A stretch of 22,095 nucleotides of DNA from Fonticula alba ATCC 38817 (GCA_000388065.2 KB932203.1); one strand, 5' to 3'; positions 3,245 to 22,064 are shown, counted from the first letter of the stretch. Notes: generated from the letters alone by a model not told the origin. Numbers and translations: made by a program.

Positions 3245-3887
3245 ATGTGTAACGGATCCTCCCCTTGCGCCCGGGCCCTCTCCCGGCGGGAGGTAGCCCG
3301 GTGCCGGCGAGCGCCGGCGGGCGCCCGGCGCCCGGCGCTGCCGGGCCTCCTGCCGGCCGCCCTGCTGGGCCTCCCGCTGGCCGCCCTGCTGGCGGTCGCC
3401 ACCGCCTCCCGCCCGGGCGCCTCGTCGCCCTTGCTCGAGCCCGAGCAGCCGGCCAGCAACAGCGACCTGCTGACCATCCGCGTGGCGGTCCTGGCCTCCG
3501 AGCATTCCGGCTTCGATGAGCAGACCGCCATCGCCACCGAGCGCCACCTGGGCATTGTCCTCCGCCGCCCGGTGCAGATCCTCTACGATGAGCTGCCGCT
3601 GACCAGCTCGGCCGCGCCCTTCCTCTCCTTCGACTCGTCCTCCGCCCGGGCCGGGCTCGACATCGGCAGTTACAACTGGTCCCCGGACCCGGTGCAGCTC
3701 ATCCGCGACATCTTCCTCCCCCGCGCCGCGTACGACCTCTACCTGATCGGCGCCTCGTGGACCCCCTCGCTGGCCGACTGGTTTGTCGACATCGAGGAGG
3801 ACCCCCAGGACCCGTCCCACCGGGGGGACCCCTTCGTCTGGCCGGAGTTCTGTGCCGTCGGCAGCAAGCCCGGTGCGTGTCCCCTCT

Positions 3888-3926
<39 letters not shown>

Positions 3927-4756
3927 CCCCGCGCCTCCCCCGCGACTGACCTGCCTGGACATCCCCGCCCCGCCGATCCCCCTCGCCGTGCCCCAGGCTG
4001 CGACTTCGACCCGCAGTTCCTGCGCCTGTACGAGCGCCCACCCAACTCCTCCGCATCCACTCCCAGCCCCCGGCATGCCATGCTCTCGGAGCGTGGCGAT
4101 GGTCGGCGGGCCGGGATCCGCGGGGCTGCCCGCAGTGCCGCCCGCGCGGCCGCGGCCGCTGCCTCCGCCGTTGCCAGCGGCGACACGTCGGCCNNNNNNN
4201 NNNGGGGGTGCGTGCATACGTGCGTGCGTGCATGCGCACATACATGCATATGCATTGCACAGGGGCGTGCATGTGTCCGCCCATGCGCAGGAGCATCCAC
4301 CGGCGGAGCGACATGCCAAGCCCCAGGGAGCAGGTGTCAGAATGGGCGGCAACACCTTGGGCGCGGGGGGGGGGGGCGGGGGAGGGGCGAGCAAGGGCAT
4401 GAGCACGGACCAATGCCACCGGTGGCCAGGCGGACGCCATCAAAGTGCAAGTCCGTCGAGAGGAGCTCGCGTCGGCGGCCGTCTACAGGGGACACACATC
4501 AAGCAGGAAGGTGTTAGAGAGAGAGAGAGAGAACCCAAGCGCCCAATGGGGCACAGGGACAAGGGAAGAGGCTCAAGGCGCGGCCCGGGCAAAGCGCACC
4601 CTTCATGTGGTAGATGCAATCCAGGGATTCGAAGATCACCTCCGACGGCGGGGCCGATGGGGCAGGCGCGGCCGCCGGCCGGGACGTCGCCGGCGGGGCG
4701 GCCATGGCGGCGGTCGGAACGGCCCCGGTCACAGCCGCCGGAGCAGCAGCAGCAGC

Positions 4757-4793
<37 letters not shown>

Positions 4794-5983
4794 GCCGCCG
4801 CCGATGTGGCGACGGCCGTGGGGGCGATGCCAACAGCGCCTGCCTCGGCGGCGCCCGGCCCCGGGGGCTTGGACGCCGTCTCGGCCATGGGCAGAGGGGG
4901 GCCCTCAACAGGCGCCAGGGGGAGGGGAACGGGGACGGCCGTAGGCGCGGCGGCCGCCTCCGGCGGGTGAGCCAGCGGCCCGGTGGTCATGGCGGCTCGC
5001 GGGGAGGAGCGGGAGTCCAGAGGGGAAGGAAGGGGAGGGAGGGCGGAAGGGGGCAGGCAGGCGCGCACGCGCGCGGGGGGGGGAACCAGTCACCGTGGGC
5101 GAAGAGAAGGAGGAAGGGGCGCAGGAGGGGAGGTGGCGAGAGGGGAATGGCCAGCAACGGGAGAGCCAGCTCCCGGCGCCGGCGTGCCCCTTTGGCGCGT
5201 CGGAACCCCGGCCCCCGGGCCGAGGAAGGGCGGCCCGGGCCGCGCACACACTCCACAACCGGGGCCGCCCGGGCCGACCCAACGGCCAACCGTCGGGCCG
5301 GGCACCGGGGGGCGATAAGCGCATGCACATCTCCCCGGCAGTGCCTTGTCTGCCCCCCCTGGCCCGCGGCCACCTTCAGCTCCCCGGCGCCGGCCCCGCA
5401 GTCCGTGCGTCCCCCCCCCCCCCCCCCCCCCCCCCTGAACGGACGGCCAGCACCCGGGGGTCCCTGCTGTCGCACGCGCCAGGGGCCGGGGGCCGGCCGA
5501 AAACACTACCCACCCCGGCCGGAGGAGGGCCTCCCCAAGTCGTGTCGCCGCCGCCGCCGCCGCCCACAACCGGCTCACCGGCCCGCGGCCCCGGCATGCG
5601 ACGCACCTGCACGCAGATCGGTCCGCACACGGCTAGCATGCGCGGCCGGACAACAGCCCCCGCCCCCCCCCCGCCCATACAACAACGGGAAGCATCTCTC
5701 CCCCGTCGTAGCGTGGCCCTCCAGCCGGCTCTCGGAGGGGCGTGCGCGCGATGGCCGGCGCGGTGGCAGCTGCCCACGAATGGGCGGCGCGCGCGCCGAC
5801 GCTTCCGGTTATTTTGGAGAGTTTAAATATGGTCCCGCGCGTGATCCCGCCCGCGCGTGACCGCCCCATGATGCCGCGGTGGGCCGTTGCCCGCGTCCGG
5901 TGTTCCAGTTTACTCTTAACAGAAATGCCCGCGTCGCGTTCTTGGGTGTGTGTGTGTGTGTAGTGGTCGTCCGACCGAACCCG

Positions 5984-6031
<48 letters not shown>

Positions 6032-9000
6032 CCCCCCCCCCGGCCCCGCCGGGCACTCCCCCGGAGCGACGTCNNNNNNNNNNTCGGCGGGCCGGGATCC
6101 GCGGGGCTGCCCGCAGTGCCGCCCGCGCGGCCGCGGCCGCTGCCTCCGCCGTTGCCAGCGGCGACACGTCGGCCTCCGGCGGTGAGGAGCTCCTCTCCGC
6201 CGGCACCATGCATGGCCTCTTCTCGGCCGCCAACACCAGCCACATCGGCGGCCCCTTCAACTTCTCGTCGATCGCGCGCATGCGCCGCGCCGAGGCCTCC
6301 TCCCCCCGGCACATCGCGGCCCCCTGGTTCTCGGACATCGGCGTGCTTTTCTTCCGCCGGGACCTGCTCGAGCGGCACTCCTCCCAGCCCGGCGTGCGCC
6401 TCCCCCCGTACGAGTCGTATGAGCAGCTAATGGTGCGTGCCCCTCGTGGGCCTGGCTTCCCCCTCCCCCTTTTCGTTTTTTTTTTGCTCTCCTGTCTCTG
6501 CTCGCTTCCCCTCCTGTGATCCCTTCTCGGTCCATCTACCGATCCCCCCCCCCCCCACTTTCCCTCACACTCATACTCATACTCATACTCATCTTCATCA
6601 AANNNNNNNNNNNNNNNNNNNNNNNNNNNNNNNNNNNNNNNNNNNNNNNNNNNNNNNNNNNNNNNNNNNNNNNNNNNNNNNNNNNNNNNNNNNNNNNNNN
6701 NNNNNNNNNNNNNNNNNNNNNNNNNNNNNNNNNNNNNNNNNNNCCCCCTTCCCCCCGCCCATCCACTCACTCGCCCTTGGTGGCGACGCCACAGAACGCC
6801 GCGGCCGCCGTTCAACTGGCCGAGTCACTCCCTTCGGGGACCGGGTCCTCGCGGCCGGCCTCCGGCCAGGCCCCCACCACCGCCCATCCGGCCGGGCACC
6901 ACGGCCTCTCGGGGCTCCTCTTCTCGGCGGCCGTCAGCGAGTCGCTCACCTCCTTCACAGTGGAGCTGATGAATGCCCATGGGGCCAGTCCCCTCATCGA
7001 GCCCAAAACCCAGCGGTCGGCCATCAGCTCCCCGCGCAACACCCTGGCCCTTTACCAGGCCCTGTCCTTCCTCCAGCGCGCGCCCTCTCACGAGGCCGCC
7101 GTCGCCTCCATCACTTCCTCCCTCAGCAGCGATGACGAAAATGCCGTGGCCAAGTTCCGTGGCTGTCGGTCGGTCTTCCTCCGGTCCTGGCCCTCGCAGT
7201 ACCGGAAACTCCGGTCCGGCATGATGCGCTGCAACAATCTCTCCGACACGGCCGACGTCGGGGTCACCGCTCTGCCGGGTGGTGGGTCCATCGGCGGCTG
7301 GGGCTGGGCGTGCGTTTTTTCCTCCTCTCCTCCCTCTCTCTCTCTCTCCACTCTCTCTTTTCTTTCTTTCTCTCTCTCTCCACTCTCTCTTTTCTTTCTT
7401 TCTCTCTCTCCACTCTCTCTTTTCTTTCTCTCTGCTCCCTCTCTCCACTCTCTCCACTCTCTCCACTCTCTCTCCACTCTCTCCACTCTCTCCACTCTCT
7501 CCACTCTCTCCACTCTCTCCACTCTCTCCACTCTCTCCACTCTCTCTCCACTCTCTCTCCACTCTCTCTCTCTCTCCACACACGCACTCTCTCTCCACTC
7601 TCTCCACTCTCTCTCTCTCTCTCCACTCCCTCTTTCTGTCTGATCACCGCTCCTTATCATGCTCACCCCCTCCCCTCCTCCAATGCACAGGATCTCCAAG
7701 GACGCCGTTGACCTGCGGGCATGCCGCGAGGCTGTCAAGTTCCTCTCCAGCCCGGATCTCCTGCGCGATCGCGCCGAACGCCTCAGCTTCATCCCCCCCC
7801 GGGTGTCGGTCGGCCGGGAGATCTGCGCCCGGCAGGCCGCCGACGCTGGGCCCACCTGCTCCAATGCCGCGGCCGGTGACCAGACCTCGGTCTTCGAGAC
7901 CGGCGACATGGACTCCGCCCATCCGGACCTGGGCCCGGGATTCTCCCTGCTCCCGGGCAACCCGCCGCCCTTCGCCTTTTGCGAGATCCTCGGCCTGTCG
8001 CCCAATTCCCCGGGGCTGGCGACCGACCCGGCCGCCTCCAACGCCCCGGCCCGGCCGAAGCACACCCTCGGCAGTGGCATCCGCAGTGTGGTTCTCGACG
8101 CGGCGGCCGCCGTGGCCGCCCACTGGAAGCAGGCCCGCTCGGCGGTTCACTCCCTGGCCCCCTCCCCGGCGGCCCCGCTCTTCGCCCCCGACACCACGGT
8201 CTCCCTCGCGGACCTGGACCTGTCCTTCCACGCGGCCGGCGGCCACTTCCCCCTGGTCCGGCCCTATCAGCCGGCCGGCTACCAGCCCGGGCTGGCCTCC
8301 TCCGGTGCCATCACCAGCAGCGCCGGCGGCACGCACAACCGCTCGGCCCCGGCCCCGGCCCCGGCCCCGGCCCCGGTGCCGGCCTCAAGCGGCGGCCCTG
8401 ACACCACCCCCCCGGAGCTGGCCCCCCACCCGGAGCCGGCCGCGCCGCTGGTCAACAGCTCCAACCAGTCCCCCGCGCCGCACATCATCATCCCGGACGC
8501 CGCGGCCGAGGGGTTCTCCCTGCCGGAAACCGGCCCCTACCAATTCCGCAGCGTGGTCCGGCCCTTTGCCCTGTCGAACACCAGCTACCGGGAGGTGTCC
8601 CACCTGGTGTCGGTCTGGTTCTACCGGCAGTTGTCGCGCTCGTCCGACCTGCCGCCGCTGCCCGACAGCCTGGCCGAAACCCCGGCCACCGGGGTCTTCG
8701 ACCTGTCCTCCCTGTCCGGGCCGTCGGCCGCCGCCGCCCGGCGCCTGTCTCTCTCGCTGTCCGAGCTGGAGACCGACATCAACTCCCTGCTGCATGGTGC
8801 CTCGTATGGGGACTTCTGCGGCATGAAGTCCGGCATCTCCATCCCCTGTCGCACGAGCCTCTTCTGCCTGGGCAATGCCTGTCGCAGCTTCTTCCTCATT
8901 GCCTTCTTCATCTCGATCCCCTTCGTGGCCCTGCTTGGCGGGGTGATGTTCCTGGTTTTCTCCGATCGCCGGCCCGAGGCGGTCAACAGTGCGCCCGATC

Positions 9001-9106
9001 GCCCCTCTCTCCTGCCTCGCTCCAGCCTCGGGCCTCCTCCCGATCCTCGGGCCATGCCTGCTCTCAGTCACTGACATGTCGTTCTGCTGTGCCCCGCCCC
9101 CCCCCC

Positions 9107-9140
<34 letters not shown>

Positions 9141-9565
9141 CGCCCTGCCCTTTCGTAGGCTGGAAAGTCTGGAACGCCTACTCGCTCTCCTGGTCGGACC
9201 TATCGCTTGATAGTGAGCCCCTCGGCCGCGGGCACTTTGGCATTGTCTATCGAGGCCGGTACCGCGGCACCGAGGTGGCCGTCAAGCGCCTGCTCTCCTC
9301 CAATGAGATCATGGAGTCCAGCACCGCCCTCCGCGAGTTCAAGGACGAGGCCCGTATCCTCGGATCCCTCCGGCACCCGAACATCATCCTCTTCATGGGC
9401 GCCTGCTTCGAGCCCGGCAACTATGCCCTGGTGACGGAGTACATGCCGCTCGGCACCCTGTATCGGGTGCTGCACAATGGCGATGTCCGTCTTGACTGGT
9501 CCCTGCGCATGCGCATGCTTCGGGACATCTGCTGCGGCATGGGTGCGGCCTACCTCTCTCCCTCT

Positions 9566-9610
<45 letters not shown>

Positions 9611-12600
9611 CACCGCCCTCTGCCTTCCTCCCCCGAAGCCCGCTAATATCCCCCCTCTCAGCCTTCCTCCACAGCTCCAAGCCCCCAATCCTCCATCGAG
9701 ACCTCAAGAGCCCCAATATCCTGGTTGACAAGGAGTTCCGCCTGAAGGTGGCGGATTTCGGCCTCACCGTTCTCAAGAACACGGACAGTGCGCTTCTCTC
9801 GACCTCCTGTCCTTGTCATGCTCCCCGCCTCTCCCTTGCCCAACCACACGCTTACCTCCCNNNNNNNNNNNNNNNNNNNNNNNNNNNNNNNNNNNNNNNN
9901 NNNNNNNNNNNNNNNNNNNNNNNNNNNNNNNNNNNNNNNNNNNNNNNNNNNNNNNNNNNNNNNNNNNNNNNNNNNNNNNNNNNNNNNNNNNNNNNNNNNN
10001 NNNNNNNNNNNNNNNNNNNNNNNNNNNNNNNNNNNNNNNNNNNNNNNNNNNNNNNNNNNNNNNNNNNNNNNNNNNNNNNNNNNNNNNNNNNNNNNNNNNN
10101 NNNNNNNNNNNNNNNNNNNNNNNNNNNNNNNNNNNNNNNNNNNNNNNNNNNNNNNNNNNNNNNNNNNNNNCCCCCCCCCCCTGCGCACACAGCCGAGGAC
10201 GTCAAGAAGAAGGCTCGCCGGTCCCGGCGTCGGAAGCACTCCGGCCTTCTGGAGCGCTCGATGTCCTACATCAACGGCTTCCGGACCGACATTCGCCGGG
10301 CCTTCACCGAGCCGCCCAGCCAGCACCCGCCGCACTTCTACCAGCAGCATCCTCCCGGCCACGGCCCGCCAGGAGCCCCGGACCCCTCCCACAGCCAGAG
10401 TCGCGTCCGGTCCTTCCTGTCCAGTGCTTCCGGCATGGCCAGCTACTTTGGCCGGTCGCTCGGCCGGCTGACCGCCTACCAGCTTCTGTCGCTGGGTCGT
10501 GTGATCGGCGAGGCGGCCGCCCACCCGGCCGATGGCCATCACGGCGGCTACCAGAGCGATCCGTACCTGTCGGACTTCGACGAGTCGGACACCGGCGCCG
10601 GAGCCCGACGCGACTATGCCTGGGCATCGCACGTTGCCCACTCGCTCGGGGGCCGTATCACCCGCCTGGGCCGGTCCCTCAGCATGTCGCTCGGTGATGC
10701 GGCCCAGGCGGATGACAGCCTGGCCGGCGGCGGCACCCGCTTCCACACCACCGGCAATGCGCACTTCTCCGACGACTTCTATGGCGACGACGAGGACGAC
10801 TATGACAGTGACTACGATGATGACGGCCTGATGTCCGACAACCAGCCCATGTTCCAGGGCACGGTGCGTGCTCGGTCCTTTCCCCCTCCTCCTCTCGCCC
10901 CCATGTGCCTTCGCCCACCATTAACCATCTGCTTTCTCTCTTGCTCTCTTCCTCTCTTTCTCTCTTGCTCTCTTCCTCTCTTCCTCTCTTGCNNNNNNNN
11001 NNNNNNNNNNNNNNNNNNNNNNNNNNNNNNNNNNNNNNNNNNNNNNNCCCCCCCCCCGCTCTCTCCCCGGCACAGCTCTTCTGGACCGCACCCGAGGTCC
11101 TCCAGCAGCACCCTTACACCGAGGCTTGCGATGTCTACTCCTTCGCCATCATCTGCTGGGAGGTGATGACGCGCGAGCAGCTGTACCCCGACCAGCACCC
11201 GATGTCGGTCGGCTACCGGGTCCTGATGGAGGACATGCGGCCACCCATCCCGGAAGCCTTCCCCGAGCACCTGGCCAGCACCATCACCACCTGCTGGTCC
11301 AAGGACCCGGAGGAGCGCACCCCCTTCAAGGACCTGCTGCCGATGTTCGAGAACCTGGCCTCGCCGCATCTCAGCGACTTCATCAACCGGCTGGGGGAGT
11401 TCCGCGCGCTCAATCGCTTTGACGATGGCCATGTGGACTTGTCGGCCCTGCTGGACAGCATTTCCCCGGAGATCGCCCCGCCGGATGGCGACCGGGTGGT
11501 CTTCACCCACACGGATGTCGAGCGCTGGACGCACATGTGGAATTGCAGCCCCACGGCCATGGCCAGCGCCATGCGCGGGTATCATCTGCTCCTGCGGCAG
11601 CTCCTGCGCGGGTCCGGCGGCTTCGAGGTGTCCATCGACGGGCGCATTTGCGTGGCCGCCTTCCGCGACGTGTCGAAGGCCGTGTACTTCGGCCTGAAGC
11701 TGCAGCACATGCTGCTGGAGCATCAGTGGCCGGCGGAAATCGAGGACCTCTGCCCGCGCGTGGTGGCCCCGGGCCCCAATGGCCGGGTGCTCTTCGCCGG
11801 GTTCCGCACCCGCATGGCCATCCACATCGGCAAGCCGACCCTCGGCTCGCACCCGATCACCCACCGGGTCACATACACCGGGCCCACCCTCAACCATGTG
11901 TACATGCTGTCCTCCACGGCCAAGGGCGGGCAGATTCTCCTGTCGCGCGAGGCGTCGCGCCAATTCCAGGAGGTCCTCGATGCCTCGGAGTGGCCCTTCG
12001 CCGATATCACCCCCAAGTTGGAGTACGCCGGCGAGGTGAAGCTGCACAAGGAATTCTTCGAGTGCATGCACGTGGTGTCGGATGCCCTGCGCGAGCGGGT
12101 CTTCGACAACCGGGCCGACGCGGTCCTCAGCGGCGGCGGCGTCAGCGGCGTCAGCAGCACCCCCAGCTCCAGTGGCGGGGCCCTCAGTGGCGGCAGCGGC
12201 GGCGGCGGCGGCGGCGGCGACGACAGCGAGATGTCGGTCTTCGGCTCGTACATGGAGAGCCACCGGTGGCACATCCCCCCGGGGGAGATCGAATTCGACC
12301 AGCCCTCCAGCAGTGTCCTCATGAGCCAGTCGTCGGGCAACTTGCTGGACCTGCCCTCGACCGCGTCGGCGGCCCCCTCGCGCACGTCGCGCATTGCCTA
12401 CTGCTCCGAGGGCGAGGTCTTCCGCGGGACCTGGCGCAATATGCCGATCGCGGCCAAGCGCCTGGAGCTCCGGCGCATCCGCTCCGGCGCGCCCTTCTCC
12501 AGCATCGCCCACTCGGTGTCCAGCAGCCCGAGCTCCTCCTTCCCGGACTCGGCCTCGCATCCGACCATGCGTCGTCGGGCCGGTGCCGCGCTCGGCACCC

Positions 12601-15354
12601 GCGCCGCGCACCATGCCCTGCTGGAGCTGTCCACCGAGCTGTCCACCGTCCTGTCGCTGCGCCATCCGAATCTCCTGCTATACATGGGGGCTGGCGCCGA
12701 TGATCGCCACATCTACCTGGTGTCGGAGCTGATGGAGCGCGGCAACCTGCTGGACCTCATTCGGCGCAATGTCAAGTGCGTCCTGTGTTCTTCCCGCTTC
12801 CCTTGTCCCTCCCTTCGGGCCTCCTTCCGCCATCCTCCCGTGGTCTCTCTCTCTCTCTACGTCGCTCTGACCATCATGTTCCTCGCTCTTCCTCGCTCTT
12901 CCTCGCTCTTCCTCGCTCTTCCTCGCTCTTCCTCGCTCTTCCTCNNNNNNNNNNNNNNNNNNNNNNNNNNNNNNNNNNNNNNNNNNNNNNNNNNNNNNNN
13001 NNNNNNNNNNNNNNNNNNNNNNNNNNCTCTTCCTCCTTCTCCCTCTCCCTCTCCCTCTCCCTCTTCTCCCCATGGCGCCACCACACCCTAGCCTCGAGAT
13101 GGGCTTCCGCCTGCGCATCATCCTCGACGTGGCCAACGCCTTCAACTATCTTCACCAGTTCCAGCCGTCCATTGTCCACGGTCGCTTCAAGACCCCCAAC
13201 GTCCTGATCGGCAACTCGTGGCAAATCAAGATCTCCGGTTACGGCATGGACCGGATCTTCGGTCGGCCGGACTCCGTGTCGGTGGTGGACTACTGGGCCT
13301 CGCCGGAGGTCCTGCGCGGGTCCCCGGCCGATGTCAAGAGCGATGTCTTCTCCTTCGGCTTGATGATGTTCGAGGCGCTGACCATGAGCCAGGCCTTCAT
13401 CGACCAGCGCAAGGACATCAAGTGGATCAATGATGTGGTGGAGAACAACCTCCGCCCGGTGATTCCCTCGACGCTGGCCCCCTTCGAGCGCCTGCTGACC
13501 GAGTGCTGGCACCGGGACCCGGAGCTTCGCCCCTCCTTCGTCCAGATTACTCGCAGCTTGCGGACCATCTGCGACCAGCAGGAGGCCCGGGCGCCGAATG
13601 GGCGCCGGGCCGTGGTCGACCGGCCGTCCTTCGGCGGGGACCTGTCCCCGGGGGCCGGACCCCTGGGGGCCTTCCCCGAGGCACGCACCAGTGCCGGTGG
13701 CCAGCTTTCCCATCAGCAGCACCCGCATGGCGGCCCGTCGCAGCGCCAGCGCCCGAGCCTGCCCGTGCCCCCGGGCCGGCAGTCTTCCCGCACCGGCGGT
13801 GGTGCCCATGGGCCGCGGTCCCCCTCGGCCGGGCCGCCCAGCCGCACGCCATCCTCCAGTGGCGGGGGGTCGGCCCTTCGCGATCCCCTGGCGGCCGGTT
13901 CTCGGGCCGATGCCGGGCCCGGTGCCCACGAGGCCGCCGGCCCGACAGCAGCCCACCATCCGAAGCGCTCCTCGCGCGATGACACCACCCGGTCCTCCCA
14001 GTCGGACATGCATCACACCCATGTAACCGGGGCCCACCTGTACCACCAGCTCCTGAGCCGCACCCGCTCGGCCAACCTCACCCGGACCAACAGCATGCCG
14101 AACATCTACCGGCCGGGTGGCGGGTCGGCCCTCTCCTCGCCGATCCCCTCGCCGGCGGTGCCCTCTTCGCCGGCCGAGCGCAGCCCGGCCCCATCGCCCT
14201 CCCCACCCCCGGAGGCCGCTTCCCTCGCTGCCGGCTCTTCAGACGCGACTCCGGTCCATGGGACGCGCTTTTCCGCGTACCTCGACTCGGATGATGCCCC
14301 CCCGGCGGCGGCGGTCTCGGCGGCGGCGGCGGCGGCGGGGCCGCCCTCCCGGCGCGCCGGCCACACCGCCGCCCACGCCGGCGAGGAGCAGGCCCACGCC
14401 GGCGGGGACAGCCCCGGGCTGTCTTCCCCCCCGGCTGCCAGTGTGTCCCCCCTGCTGGGGCACATGAATCCGGACTTTTCGCTGGAGGCTTCCATGCCCC
14501 CCCTGGCCGGCAGGTCGATCTCCTCCTCCTCCTCCTCCTCCTCTATCTCGGCCTCGGCCTCCCCCAGTCCTTGTGCAGCCACCGCCCCGCCGGCGGTGGG
14601 TTCCGTGGTCGCGAGCGCCGCCGAGCCGCCCGGCCAGCTGCCTGACCCGGCCGCGCCCGCCTCCGCCAGCCCCACCTCCACCACCGCCGGCGGTGGCCGC
14701 TCAGCAGCCCCCCGGATGGTGGTCAACACTGCCGCTCCCGCTGGCAGTGGGCTTGCCCTGCTGCAGGTGGCTGCCTCCGGGCAGAGTGCCGAGGCGGGCG
14801 AGGCGTCCCCCTCGCACGCGCCGGCCCCCAGCCCAGACATGCTGCTCGATGGCCCGGCGGCGTCTGAGGACCCGGTGCCGGGGGCGGCCCCGGCCGGCAC
14901 TCCGTCGCCGACCGCCGCGGCGCCGGCGGCGGCGGCGGCGGTGGCCATGCCGGCCTCCGTGGCCGTGATCGCCCCGGCCAGTCCGCCGCCAGCCGCCCCG
15001 CTGGTCAAGACCGGGCCGACCGGCACCTCCTCCCTGCCGCCCCTCCCTCGGCCCGGGCCCGGGCCCGGGCCCGGGGCCATCGGGGTTCCCAGCATCGCGT
15101 CCTCGGGTGGTGGCCCCGCGCGCCGGGCCCTCTTTGCCGCCCGGCCGCACGTCGCCAGCACCCTCAGCCAGGTGAGCTTCCCATCGGACGAGAGCTCCTG
15201 CGAGAACCTCGGGGTCTATTCCTCGGACCTGCTGGCCTTCGACACGTCTCTCGAGGCGGAGGACCTTCTCCTGTCGTCGGGCTCGCCTCCCGAGGAGAAG
15301 GCGCCGGTCGCGGTCGAGTCGCCCGCCTCCCCGGTGGAGCTGGCCCAGGACTAG
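3245..15354 (+). CDS. Multidomain receptor kinase, ~2,679 aa: signal peptide / solute-binding (PBP2) ectodomain / TM / TKL kinase / cyclase-like / pseudokinase / disordered tail
   Basis: Exons: 3245-3872, 3997-4193 continuing at 6175-6432 (91-bp duplication counted once), 6795-7309, 7691-8988, 9159-9542, 9662-9787, 10193-10863, 11076-12775, 13092-15354 (TAG). All introns are GT..AG with matching phases, and the exon sum is 8040 nt (divisible by 3). Motifs join across junctions: GGWGW-A-ISKD, CCGM-A-FLHS, FQGT-LFWTAPE. The start ATG is uncertain, and N-gaps inside introns could hide small exons. Confidence 0.9.
3338..3406 (+). other. Signal-peptide hydrophobic core of the receptor
   Basis: [23 protein letters not shown] follows an Arg-rich N-region and precedes a polar domain. 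Confidence 0.7.
4411..4990 (-). CDS. HIRA: HIRA/Hir1-like histone chaperone WD40 protein, 5' fragment only (2 exons, then truncated by a gap)
   Basis: Exon 1 is 4990-4600 (GCCGCCATG start) and exon 2 is 4482-4411. The intron runs GTGCGC..CTAAC..TGTAG with matching phase 1. The spliced peptide [30 protein letters not shown] resembles the Hir1/HIRA N-terminus (H...EIY(T/S)VD...DG.R(L/F)ATGG) as recalled. The next intron runs into Ns at 4203. Confidence 0.7.
4742..4801 (-). repeat. Coding (GCT/GCG)n trinucleotide repeat, ~20-residue poly-Ala
   Basis: (GCA)n on + lies in frame within HIRA-like exon 1. Confidence 0.9.
7325..7630 (+). repeat. Intronic CT-rich tandem repeat, unit ~CCACTCTCT with (CT)n variants
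   Basis: Fills most of receptor intron 7310-7690. Confidence 0.9.
8345..8374 (+). repeat. Coding (GGCCCC)5 hexamer encoding a Pro-Ala repeat
   Basis: Seen directly, within an ectodomain insertion. Confidence 0.85.
8889..8960 (+). other. Single transmembrane helix
   Basis: [24 protein letters not shown] (24 uncharged residues), followed by SDRR and then the kinase. Confidence 0.85.
9200..11360 (+). other. Kinase domain 1, TKL-type, catalytic motifs intact
   Basis: [69 protein letters not shown]. Confidence 0.95.
11475..11960 (+). other. Class III adenylyl/guanylyl cyclase-like domain, degenerate
   Basis: [54 protein letters not shown] and AKGGQILLS occur in canonical cyclase order. Confidence 0.85.
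12267..13560 (+). other. Kinase domain 2, predicted pseudokinase
   Basis: [52 protein letters not shown]. The Gly loop, HRD and DFG are replaced. Confidence 0.85.
12881..12944 (+). repeat. Intronic 10-mer tandem repeat (CCTCGCTCTT)n running into an N-gap
   Basis: About six copies before the Ns at 12945. Confidence 0.9.
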
Positions 15355-16229: not shown

Positions 16230-19832
<3,603 letters not shown>

Positions 19833-20331: not shown

Positions 20332-22064
20332 TCAGAGGACCGTCAAAAGGGCGAAGGACGCGTAGAACAGGAAGATGGGGTAGAAAACCAGGACCAGCTG
20401 CTCGCGCAGGCCGTAGGCCTTGACGAAGAGCGACGACCCGGCGATGGTACACCAGCTCACCGTCAGCAGGGCCAGGAAGAGGGAAACACCACCCCTGTGC
20501 CGGAGGGAGGGGGACGGGGCACGTGTGTCAGCGGGCGGGAGGAGCAGCAGTCGGGGCAGCCGCCGGCACCTTGTCAACCGGCGGCGCACAGGGCGAAGAG
20601 GAACGCACTGCAAAGTTACCAGGGCCGTGATGAAGGAGAGCCCCACCATCGGCAGGAGCCCGTAGCCCAGGATGGAGGCCGTCTTGGAGACCGAAACGCT
20701 GGGGGGGCGGATTCCGCGCCGAGCCCGGCCGGCCAGTCCCACAGGAGGGCACGAACGGGCGCACCATGCGAAGGCGGCTTGCGCGTCAGAAGAAGCGAAG
20801 GAGGCGGATGGCCACGGAGGAGAGGAGGGGGGGGGGGCGCGCGCGCGCGGAAGCGGGAGGCGGCAGGAGGAAGGACAGGGACGCCACAGGGGAGGCACGG
20901 CCATCGGCCAACGCACGAGATGGTCCCCATGAGGTTGAAGAGCATGCACAGACCAAGACACCCGACGACCGCCACGCCGTAGATGTAGCTGAAGTGGACC
21001 TTGCCACTCTGTGTCGATGAGGTCAGTGACCCGGGGACAAAGGATGCCAGGAAGGGGGGAGTGGGGCAGGGGGAGCGACGGAGGGGCAAGCAGCGCAAGG
21101 GCCCGAGGGCGGGGCGACCGGAGAAGGCAGGGCCCCGAGACCCAGGACAAGGAAGAGGGCGAGGGAGGCACAAGCCCCAGGGACCCACGCACAAACAGCA
21201 AGAAGGCCCCGAGCAGGAGGCAGAAGAGCAGCGGCCCGGCCAGGTCGTCGCCATCCTCATCGGCATCGGCAGCAACTTCGGCCGAGCCACGCAGGGATGA
21301 CAGCTGCTTCGAGGGGTTCAGGACATGGAGGGACTGCGGGATGTTGCATCGGACGAGGGGCAGGCCAGGAACCAGCCAAGTCAGTGGCAGGGCGCGCGCA
21401 CAGGCACAAGCACAAGCACATGGGGCCCGGGCTTTTCCGCGGGCACGCACCTTGGACTTGATCCTTCCGAAGTTGATGCCGAGCTCTGCCGGGGACGCAT
21501 TGCCAGGGGAGGCCCGGGGGGGGGGGGCCGAGCATGTCAGAGCCACAATCGCCATGAGAAGAGGGGAGGAGGATGGAAAAAAAAGAAAAAAGAAGAGGCG
21601 CGGCGCGGGGAAGGACAAGAAAGGCGGGGGCAGGTGAGGAGGGATCTCGGCCCGGGGCCTGGCCGGCAGGGCGCACCCTCCAGCAGCGGCGGCTCGCCCT
21701 CGAAGCCCCCGGTGCCGAAGGCCGCCGAGTAGGAGATGGTGATCGGCCCGGAGCCCGGGAGCTGGCCGCCAATGGCATCGCCGGAGAACATGGCCCCGGG
21801 ATTTTGGCCGGAAGTGGACACCCGGCCGCCGATGTTGGTCGGGAAGCTGTACGCATGGCCGGCCGGCGCGTGCGCTGTTGGCAGCGATCCGCTGGACGCC
21901 GAGCCGATGGACCCCATCGCCGGGCCGGCCGGCATGCCGGGGACGCCGACGCCAAAGTGCCCGGCCGGGGCCTCTCCCCCGGGCGGCATCTCGAGCATCT
22001 CGAAGTTCGGGTGGAACCACGGCTCGCTGGCGGCCTGCGACGGATCGACGCCGGGCTGGGACAT
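20332..22064 (-). CDS. YIP1: Yip1-domain Golgi/ER membrane protein (YIPF5/7, Yip1-like), ~302 aa
   Basis: Exons: 22064-21677, 21485-21451, 21333-21193, 21008-20917, 20698-20609, 20494-20332. The sum is 909 nt and phases match. Motifs: FEGEPPLLEELGINF, DLAGPLLFCL, GKVHFSYIYG, ASILGYGLLPMV, LVFYPIFLFYASFALL. Confidence 0.93.

Follow-up and report, generated by a model that had tools for sequence, protein, structure and literature searches.

Receptor-type nucleotidyl cyclases in which the cyclase is flanked by two Ser/Thr kinase domains are encoded by 66–67 genes of Acanthamoeba, and the same layout is found in giant viruses (Clarke et al. 2013, PMC4053784). Another 43 such genes were described for Physarum polycephalum (Schaap et al. 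2015, PMC4758236), and the traffic of these genes with viruses was discussed by Maumus and Blanc (2016). The published architecture consists of an extracellular periplasmic-binding-protein domain, a transmembrane (TM) segment and a kinase–cyclase–kinase cassette, and all family members are counted as nucleotidyl cyclases in the genome papers (PMC4053784; PMC4758236). In the literature, no paper mentioning the kinase–cyclase–kinase family in Fonticula was found. Here we analyzed a gene at positions 3245–15354 (+ strand) of a 22,095-nt stretch of Fonticula alba ATCC 38817, hereafter the window, which a preliminary description had put forward as a candidate for an undescribed signalling system. 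The locus is one expressed gene of nine exons, and its product is a divergent member of the described receptor family, not a new signalling system. What is new here is the opisthokont host, a possible sister in Chromosphaera, and a 217-residue insert in the activation loop of the first kinase.

The gene model was built by reading the frames by eye on the + strand and then fixing the junctions; its features are collected in Table 1. Splicing gave an open reading frame (ORF) of 8,040 nt that is free of internal stops over its 2,679 codons; it begins at ATG 3245, the first ATG downstream of an in-frame stop, and ends with the stop codon at 15352–15354, in exact agreement with the earlier coordinates. 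All eight donors read GTGCG and all eight acceptors YAG, and the splice phases agree throughout. The G+C content of the window is 70–80%, and long ORFs are present in every frame. On the + strand, Pfam detected two protein-kinase domains, each spread over several exons or ORFs, and between them a Guanylate_cyc match of 21.7 bits, which is borderline to the cut-off of 21.9. The spliced model reads signal peptide, solute-binding fold, TM helix, tyrosine kinase-like (TKL) kinase, cyclase-like domain, second kinase and a tail of about 590 residues, which is the order given in the preliminary description.

The signal peptide covers residues 1–57, with a hydrophobic core at residues 30–56 (Kyte–Doolittle (KD) peak 2.18), and a single TM helix was located at residues 933–956 (KD peak 2.51). 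Nine N-X-S/T sequons occur in the 874-residue ectodomain, compared with two in the 1,724 cytoplasmic residues. The juxtamembrane stalk contains four cysteines at residues 909–930; in the relatives, the corresponding piece shows the pattern C.C.....G..C and Pfam EGF matches before the TM helix, while the stalk here gave no Pfam EGF match. Three features of the family are present, namely a signal peptide with a head of solute-binding protein (SBP) type, a single TM helix, and a class III cyclase domain between two kinases. The protein quite probably belongs to the "receptor domain–TM–kinase–cyclase–kinase" family, as a membrane receptor of type I.

The first kinase (kinase 1) retains the G-loop, VAVK, the αC Glu, the HRD Asp, the catalytic Asn, the DFG Asp and APE, with a four-site pattern of KDND. 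Its nearest solved kinase is CTR1 (3P86, E 6.5e-23), and TNNI3K, KSR, Raf, ROCO4 and MLK are also among the best solved matches. Kinase 1 is a TKL kinase with every catalytic residue intact, and is predicted to be active. Its DFG-to-APE segment measures 242 residues against a median of 27 in relatives, and the 217-residue insert contained in it carries a 12-residue basic cluster at the start and a 19-residue acidic cluster at the end. The second kinase (kinase 2) reads HGRFKTPN for HRDLKxxN, GYG for DFG, and AxCxxG for GxGxxG, so that its four sites are K R N G. It retains the VAIK Lys and the catalytic Asn; the Asp residues of HRD and DFG are missing, as are two glycines of the G-loop. Judged by these residues, kinase 2 is a pseudokinase, that is, a kinase fold without essential catalytic residues. 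The last 590 residues of the protein are of low complexity, rich in Ala, Ser, Pro and Gly, and matched no Pfam family.

The domain between the kinases aligned to the cyclase of trypanosome GRESAG4.1 (PDB 1FX2) with an E value of 4.7e-11. Its AlphaFold2 (AF2) model gave a mean predicted local distance difference test (pLDDT) score of 91.1, and Foldseek returned 1FX4 and 1FX2 (E 2e-14, TM-score 0.75) and then many class III cyclases. In active class III cyclases, two Asp bind the metal, a Lys/Glu and an Asp/Cys specify the substrate, and an Asn and an Arg serve the transition state. Compared with D K D D N R at these six sites, the domain reads D S R T N M; two of the six are kept, namely the first metal-binding Asp and the Asn, and through the substitutions K→S, D→R, D→T and R→M the domain has lost the second metal-binding Asp, both of the residues that specify the substrate, and the Arg of the transition state. 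The fold of an active class III cyclase is kept and four of its six catalytic residues are not; we regard the domain as a class III cyclase module whose fold is predicted with confidence and which is predicted to be inactive. By these residues, only one of the three enzymes would be active, as had been claimed before: kinase 1 is intact, four of the six cyclase residues are lost, and kinase 2 has lost both catalytic Asp.

Relatives were collected by an exhaustive, profile-free protein search with exon 8, of which the best 150 hits were examined. The closest protein was at most 34% identical to exon 8, and the best E value was 5.8e-83. The kinase–cyclase–kinase order was found in 53 of these 150 hits, and in 46 of the 53 the domain string consisted of precisely these three domains. 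The sources include Mastigamoeba, Pelomyxa, Thecamoeba, Fabomonas, Diphylleia, Thecamonas, Chromosphaera and a Pandoravirus. The last of these, together with the published layout in giant viruses (PMC4053784), bears out the link to Acanthamoeba and giant viruses that the preliminary description had drawn. The heads of the relatives are diverse (Kelch, ANF receptor, Peripla_BP_6, PBP_like_2, 5'-nucleotidase and SBP_bac_1/8), and an SBP_bac_1/8 head combined with the kinase–cyclase–kinase cassette occurs in Pelomyxa, Fabomonas, Thecamoeba and one further contig.

Residues were then scored across the 53 relatives at four sites per kinase and six in the cyclase. All three domains were intact in 11 relatives, the cyclase alone was degenerate in 20, and six showed the live/dead/dead pattern of the present gene (kinase 1, cyclase and kinase 2, respectively). 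In kinase 2, the HRD Asp was kept in 45 and the DFG Asp in 51 relatives. All six cyclase residues were canonical in 11–12, fewer than a quarter, with each single cyclase site canonical in 20–31. The preliminary description had stated that many characterised homologues with the same architecture and degenerations would speak against an undescribed system. Such homologues largely exist, because the architecture is published for the 66–67 Acanthamoeba and 43 Physarum genes, and because the head type (in Pelomyxa, Fabomonas and Thecamoeba) and the degenerations recur among relatives, with six of the 53 carrying the same pattern and 20 a dead cyclase only; none of them, however, is experimentally characterised. 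The claim of an undescribed signalling system is hence not supported. These counts also affect how gene numbers are read, since about half of the family's counted "nucleotidyl cyclases" probably cannot make cyclic nucleotides, as far as their residues tell.

It is conceivable that the cyclase-like domain still works, or does so conditionally, with the Asp of IDGR as metal ligand or in a pair with some other cyclase subunit, in which case cAMP or cGMP would carry the signal of the receptor. The fully kept fold (pLDDT 91), the retention of the first metal-binding Asp and the Asn, the 11–12 relatives with all six residues, and the literature's counting of all family members as nucleotidyl cyclases are in line with this. 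The replacement of four canonical residues (K→S, D→R, D→T and R→M) argues against it; the domain therefore fits neither the metal-donating nor the substrate/transition-state half of a heterodimer. Moreover, in the Chromosphaera relative described below, five of the six sites are degenerate, and the Ser and Thr of the present domain recur at both substrate-specifying ones. A working cyclase is hence considered very unlikely, and we continue with a cyclase-homology domain that is predicted to be dead.

Compared with the Acanthamoeba and Physarum receptors, the present protein shares the signal peptide, the periplasmic-binding-type head, the single TM helix and a homologous cassette, and its four-Cys stalk may correspond to their Cys-rich juxtamembrane piece. 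It differs in having an SBP_bac_1/8-type head and not PBP_like_2, a cyclase and a kinase 2 that are both predicted to be dead, the 217-residue activation-loop insert, the 590-residue tail and an opisthokont host. Proteins of Pelomyxa schiedti (KAH3765580.1, KAH3767572.1), Fabomonas tropica and Thecamoeba quadrilineata (P0015, P0019, P0025 and P0058) have the ectodomain family and the cytoplasmic order in common with this gene. Their cassettes are only approximately 30–36% identical to the present one, and phmmer detected no similarity of their heads to this one. Unlike in the present gene, no catalytic residue is lost from any of the three domains of P0015, P0019 and P0025, and P0058 of Thecamoeba is degenerate in all three.

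A similar plan, with a periplasmic-binding-protein-like head, one TM helix and a class III cyclase domain, is known for the metazoan receptor guanylyl cyclases and the trypanosome receptor adenylyl cyclases (GRESAG4/ESAG4), and the former also carry a pseudokinase. GRESAG4.1 and 4.3 have the nearest solved cyclase domains. In both groups, the output comes from an active cyclase, and any kinase-like domain is a dead regulator; this is inverted in the present protein, as predicted from its residues. The heads of both groups are of type I (ANF or LIVBP-like), in contrast to the SBP_bac_1 type observed here. The metazoan layout, an ANF head with a pseudokinase before an active cyclase, thus did not fit, as this gene has an SBP_bac_1-like head, an intact first kinase and a degenerate cyclase.

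The closest head and the closest kinase 1 were found in a metagenomic SBP–TM–TKL receptor kinase (P0124; ENA ERZ19032725 scaffold_38002, L001:278-2797). This protein shares the four-Cys stalk and a small activation-loop insert at the same site. It is encoded by a complete single-exon gene that stops 35 residues past the kinase, and is without the cyclase, the second kinase and the low-complexity inserts. As a side observation, the P0124 gene has 51% GC and no introns, and directly upstream of its called start there is a further ATG that opens a signal peptide. The identity of kinase 1 was highest to P0124 (60% and 53%), followed by P0049 (53% and 49%), the product of Nk52_evm44s2152 of the ichthyosporean Chromosphaera perkinsii. 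The DFG-to-APE segment at the same site measures 34 residues in P0124 and 60 in P0049, and the 217-residue insert therefore looks like a stepwise expansion.

P0049 reads TM–kinase–degenerate cyclase–degenerate kinase, like the present protein. Its cyclase is degenerate at five of the six sites, with Ser and Thr at the same two substrate-specifying positions as here. It differs in that its gene model begins at the TM segment and is headless, and in that kinase 2 reads HCN and DFA. In a maximum-likelihood (ML) tree, P0049 was placed as sister to this gene with a Shimodaira–Hasegawa-like approximate likelihood ratio test (SH-aLRT) value of 94, with long-branch attraction flagged, and in leave-one-out trees each of the two alone fell on the unresolved backbone. 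A homology search limited to the P0049 cyclase region found only a Chromosphaera paralogue. P0049 is hence a possible sister, and the pairing may be long-branch attraction. A further idea, which we regard as doubtful, is that Fonticula and Chromosphaera hold remnants of an opisthokont kinase–cyclase–kinase branch in which the cyclase and kinase 2 had already become pseudo-enzymes before the Holomycota/Holozoa split. If this were true, the cassette of a dead cyclase and a dead kinase would have persisted for about a billion years, serving one TKL kinase as a scaffold that dimerises and acts allosterically but catalyses nothing; such a regulatory design is not known from receptor kinases. Irrespective of this idea, a relative of fungi is now seen to have a receptor architecture that had been regarded as confined to Acanthamoeba, Physarum and their giant viruses. 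Together with the hits in Thecamonas, Chromosphaera, Diphylleia, Fabomonas and Archamoebae, this suggests an old design that is shared widely by protists, amoeboid and flagellate alike.

The ectodomain appears, on sequence grounds, to be related to the CUT1-type sugar-binding proteins of bacterial ATP-binding cassette (ABC) importers, of the alpha-glycoside, maltose and trehalose kind. In phmmer searches against PDB, the second part of exon 2 matched MalE3 (6DTQ, E 3.5e-4) and positions 112–133 of the 6J9W family, and exon 3 matched positions 157–256 of the latter (E 0.0028). Two head exons hence match one solved SBP family in colinear order. 6J9W itself is a Thermus alpha-glycoside binder that accepts several sugars (PMC7949145). 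A local profile made from the relatives' heads scored 24 bits on this head. The comparison with the P0124 head gave an E value of 9e-16 in the local set, and P0124 in turn has Pfam SBP_bac_8/1 and matches 6J9W with E 5.7e-22; a homology search with the whole of P0124 was dominated by kinase matches, none of which was informative on the head. The bacterial sugar-type ectodomain proposed in the preliminary description is thus supported by the matches to 6DTQ and 6J9W and by way of P0124.

The head also contains three low-complexity inserts rich in Ala, Pro and Ser, with a total of approximately 370 residues, one of which, located in exon 4, has 250 residues. These inserts, the strong divergence of the head with Pfam SBP models missing the exons, and the confinement of identity to solved SBPs to short blocks are all in line with an ectodomain that no longer binds a small ligand, but is a structural relic or a module for protein or cell-wall contact, in a receptor whose regulator is neither a sugar nor a nutrient. 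Nevertheless, the core blocks occur in order, that is, PWF.D.G.L.YR.DLL, an aromatic-rich middle, GGWG and a C-terminal RP...Y.EVS, and in P0124, the nearest relative, no insert breaks up the SBP head. Such a loss of ligand binding is therefore judged unlikely, and the head is treated below as a putative ligand-binding domain.

Expression was examined with RNA contigs from four small 2012 runs, which were aligned to 3900–9899. The GT..AG joint 7309>7691 was present in three runs. The joint 8988>9159 was found in contigs 8839–8988 + 9159–9326 and 8652–8988 + 9159–9256 (records 14 and 27), and ties the exon with the ectodomain end and TM helix to the exon where kinase 1 begins; no assembly gap separates the two. 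This is the only link that is not forced by domain continuity, and it was therefore shown directly by RNA contigs. In the contig 9661–9787 (record 29), both flanks map elsewhere. RNA depth was approximately zero in the introns and in most of 4204–6073, the exceptions being two low-complexity patches with loose ends. Sequence words of 10171–10992 occurred in runs X2 and X3 at 0.83 and 0.80, compared with 0.82 expected if only exon 7 is present in RNA, and those of 11049–13000 occurred in both runs at 0.87. Thus, of the mRNA confirmation called for in the preliminary description, two joints and the presence of exons 6–8 in RNA were obtained, and contigs across 4193/6175 or the whole mRNA were not. 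Separately, position 8844 is A in all four RNA runs and C in the assembly, which changes CCC (Pro) to ACC (Thr) at residue 918 in the juxtamembrane Cys-rich stalk; this mismatch stems from an error of the assembly or from a difference between strains.

The preliminary description had named the N-gaps as places where the region might fall into separate genes. All four large gaps (6603–6743, 9861–10170, 10993–11047 and 12945–13026) lie within predicted introns and are flanked by the halves of single domains (SBP, kinase 1, kinase 1 and the pseudokinase, respectively), with consistent splice phases across each. The introns are rich in poly-C or (CT)n, and the large gaps adjoin CT- or C-rich low-complexity sequence. 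Because every large gap sits in such an intron, the gaps represent low-complexity intron sequence, not lost coding sequence. The remaining two gaps, of 10 N each (4194–4203 and 6074–6083), enclose a 1,870-nt piece, 4204–6073. An exact 91-nt duplicate, 4103–4193 = 6084–6174, lies flush with both of them; with one copy the frame is open, and with both copies a stop appears at codon 309. RNA contigs 4031–4184 and 6165/6167–6370 abut at one position of this duplicate. The GC skew is positive in 4204–6073 and negative in the surrounding gene, the piece showed no similarity to the remainder of the gene, and no Pfam family was matched on either strand. We conclude that 4194–6174 is a probable scaffolding artefact, in which two overlapping contig ends were left unmerged and a foreign small contig, probably misplaced by the scaffolder, was inserted between them. 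A real intron or insertion at 4204–6073 was rejected, as it would leave two 91-nt exon copies and break the frame. The gaps hence do not divide the gene: four are intronic, the 10-N pair brackets a contig that is not part of the mRNA, and a single 91-nt copy keeps the frame.

With six assembly gaps and a misplaced contig at 4204–6073 in the locus, and two of three enzyme domains dead, one could also assume a decaying or chimeric gene model, in which the head and the kinase cassette come from different genes scaffolded across gaps, or a transcribed pseudogene. This assumption conflicts with the gap-free RNA link between the TM exon and the kinase exon, with the single-domain halves and matching phases that flank every gap, and with the identical domain order of the relatives. 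Furthermore, 2,679 stop-free codons are very unlikely by chance, even at 70% GC. The assumption is hence extremely improbable, and one expressed gene is retained. In practice, the analysis provides a corrected gene model over six assembly gaps, and an example of a receptor kinase in which two predicted pseudo-enzymes form part of the core.

A possible mechanism can be outlined for such a receptor. The receptor may sense nutrients or prey metabolites, as suggested in the preliminary description. A small ligand, possibly a sugar, would close the two-lobed head, and the signal may cross the single TM helix through an altered dimer geometry. Class III cyclase domains function only as dimers, and for this reason the dead cyclase domain is proposed to act as a dimerisation and coupling module. 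Kinase 1 would be the sole output enzyme and would probably trans-phosphorylate its own long activation loop and the tail, with the pseudokinase serving as an allosteric partner or docking surface for it. The disordered tail may recruit downstream proteins, and the receptor would make no cyclic nucleotide.

Several points weigh against this reading. Analogy, not results, underlies the roles proposed for the cyclase domain, the pseudokinase and the tail. In the cyclase domain, an Asp is located two residues ahead of the lost metal-binding Asp (IDGR versus EGD). Pfam SBP families were unmatched on stop-to-stop ORFs and single exons, even at E 10; the head was therefore identified through the PDB phmmer searches and P0124. 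For exon 1, the PDB phmmer search gave no match and a feature search was uninformative; a weak match of residues 158–184 to residues 77–103 of P0124 gives weak support to it as the first lobe. "Sugar" as the ligand is a guess at the family level. Finally, no listed RNA contig bridges 4193/6175, and none spans the whole mRNA.

Table 1. Positions of the exons, introns and interposed contig in the window, with the evidence for each.
Feature	Position	Strand	Evidence
Exon 1: ATG, signal peptide, ectodomain start	3245–3872	+	donor ccg/GTGCGT
Exon 2, first part (resumes at 6175)	3997–4193	+	acceptor CCCCAG/gct in phase with exon 1; RNA contig 4031–4184
Probable assembly artefact outside the gene	4194–6174	.	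10-N gap, 1,870-nt contig, 10-N gap, second 91-nt copy
Exon 2, second part: 17-residue SBP motif at 6322–6372	6175–6432	+	PDB match; RNA contigs 6165/6167–6370
Exon 3: middle of SBP fold, GGW at end	6795–7309	+	6J9W-family match; RNA joint 7309>7691
Exon 4: C-terminal part of SBP, 250-residue Ala/Pro/Ser insert, four-Cys stalk (8817–8882), TM helix (8889–8960)	7691–8988	+	RNA contigs 7691–8988
Exon 5: kinase 1 N-lobe; GRGHFG 9224–9241, VAVK 9275–9286	9159–9542	+	Pfam PK_Tyr_Ser-Thr, E 1.2e-20; RNA
Exon 6: kinase 1 catalytic loop HRDLKSPN 9694–9717, DFG 9754–9762	9662–9787	+	Pfam; RNA contig 9661–9787
Exon 7: 217-residue kinase 1 activation-loop insert, QGT at end	10193–10863	+	phase-matched GT-AG borders; RNA words
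Exon 8, whole	11076–12775	+	
Exon 8, part 1: kinase 1 C-lobe from LFWTAPEV	11076–11363	+	Pfam positions 167–255 of 258
Exon 8, part 2: class III cyclase-homology domain, predicted inactive	11436–12098	+	1FX2 alignment, AF2, Foldseek, residue table
Exon 8, part 3: pseudokinase N-lobe; AxCxxG G-loop, IAAK, 48-residue Ser-rich insert	12381–12775	+	Pfam, alignment
Exon 9, whole	13092–15354	+	
Exon 9, part 1: pseudokinase C-lobe; HGRFKTPN 13177–13200, GYG 13237–13245	13092–13584	+	Pfam, E 1.7e-24
Exon 9, part 2: 590-residue tail and stop codon	13585–15354	+	one ORF with pseudokinase C-lobe; composition
Eight introns	3873–3996, 6433–6794, 7310–7690, 8989–9158, 9543–9661, 9788–10192, 10864–11075, 12776–13091	+	GTGCG...YAG

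Two neighbouring features were observed downstream of the gene. A fragment of a RabGAP-TBC domain is located at 18346–18484 (+ strand, E 2.1e-6), and a Yip1-domain membrane protein at 20347–20694 (− strand), extending past the window end, was detected with an E value of 1.4e-5, under the Pfam cut-off.

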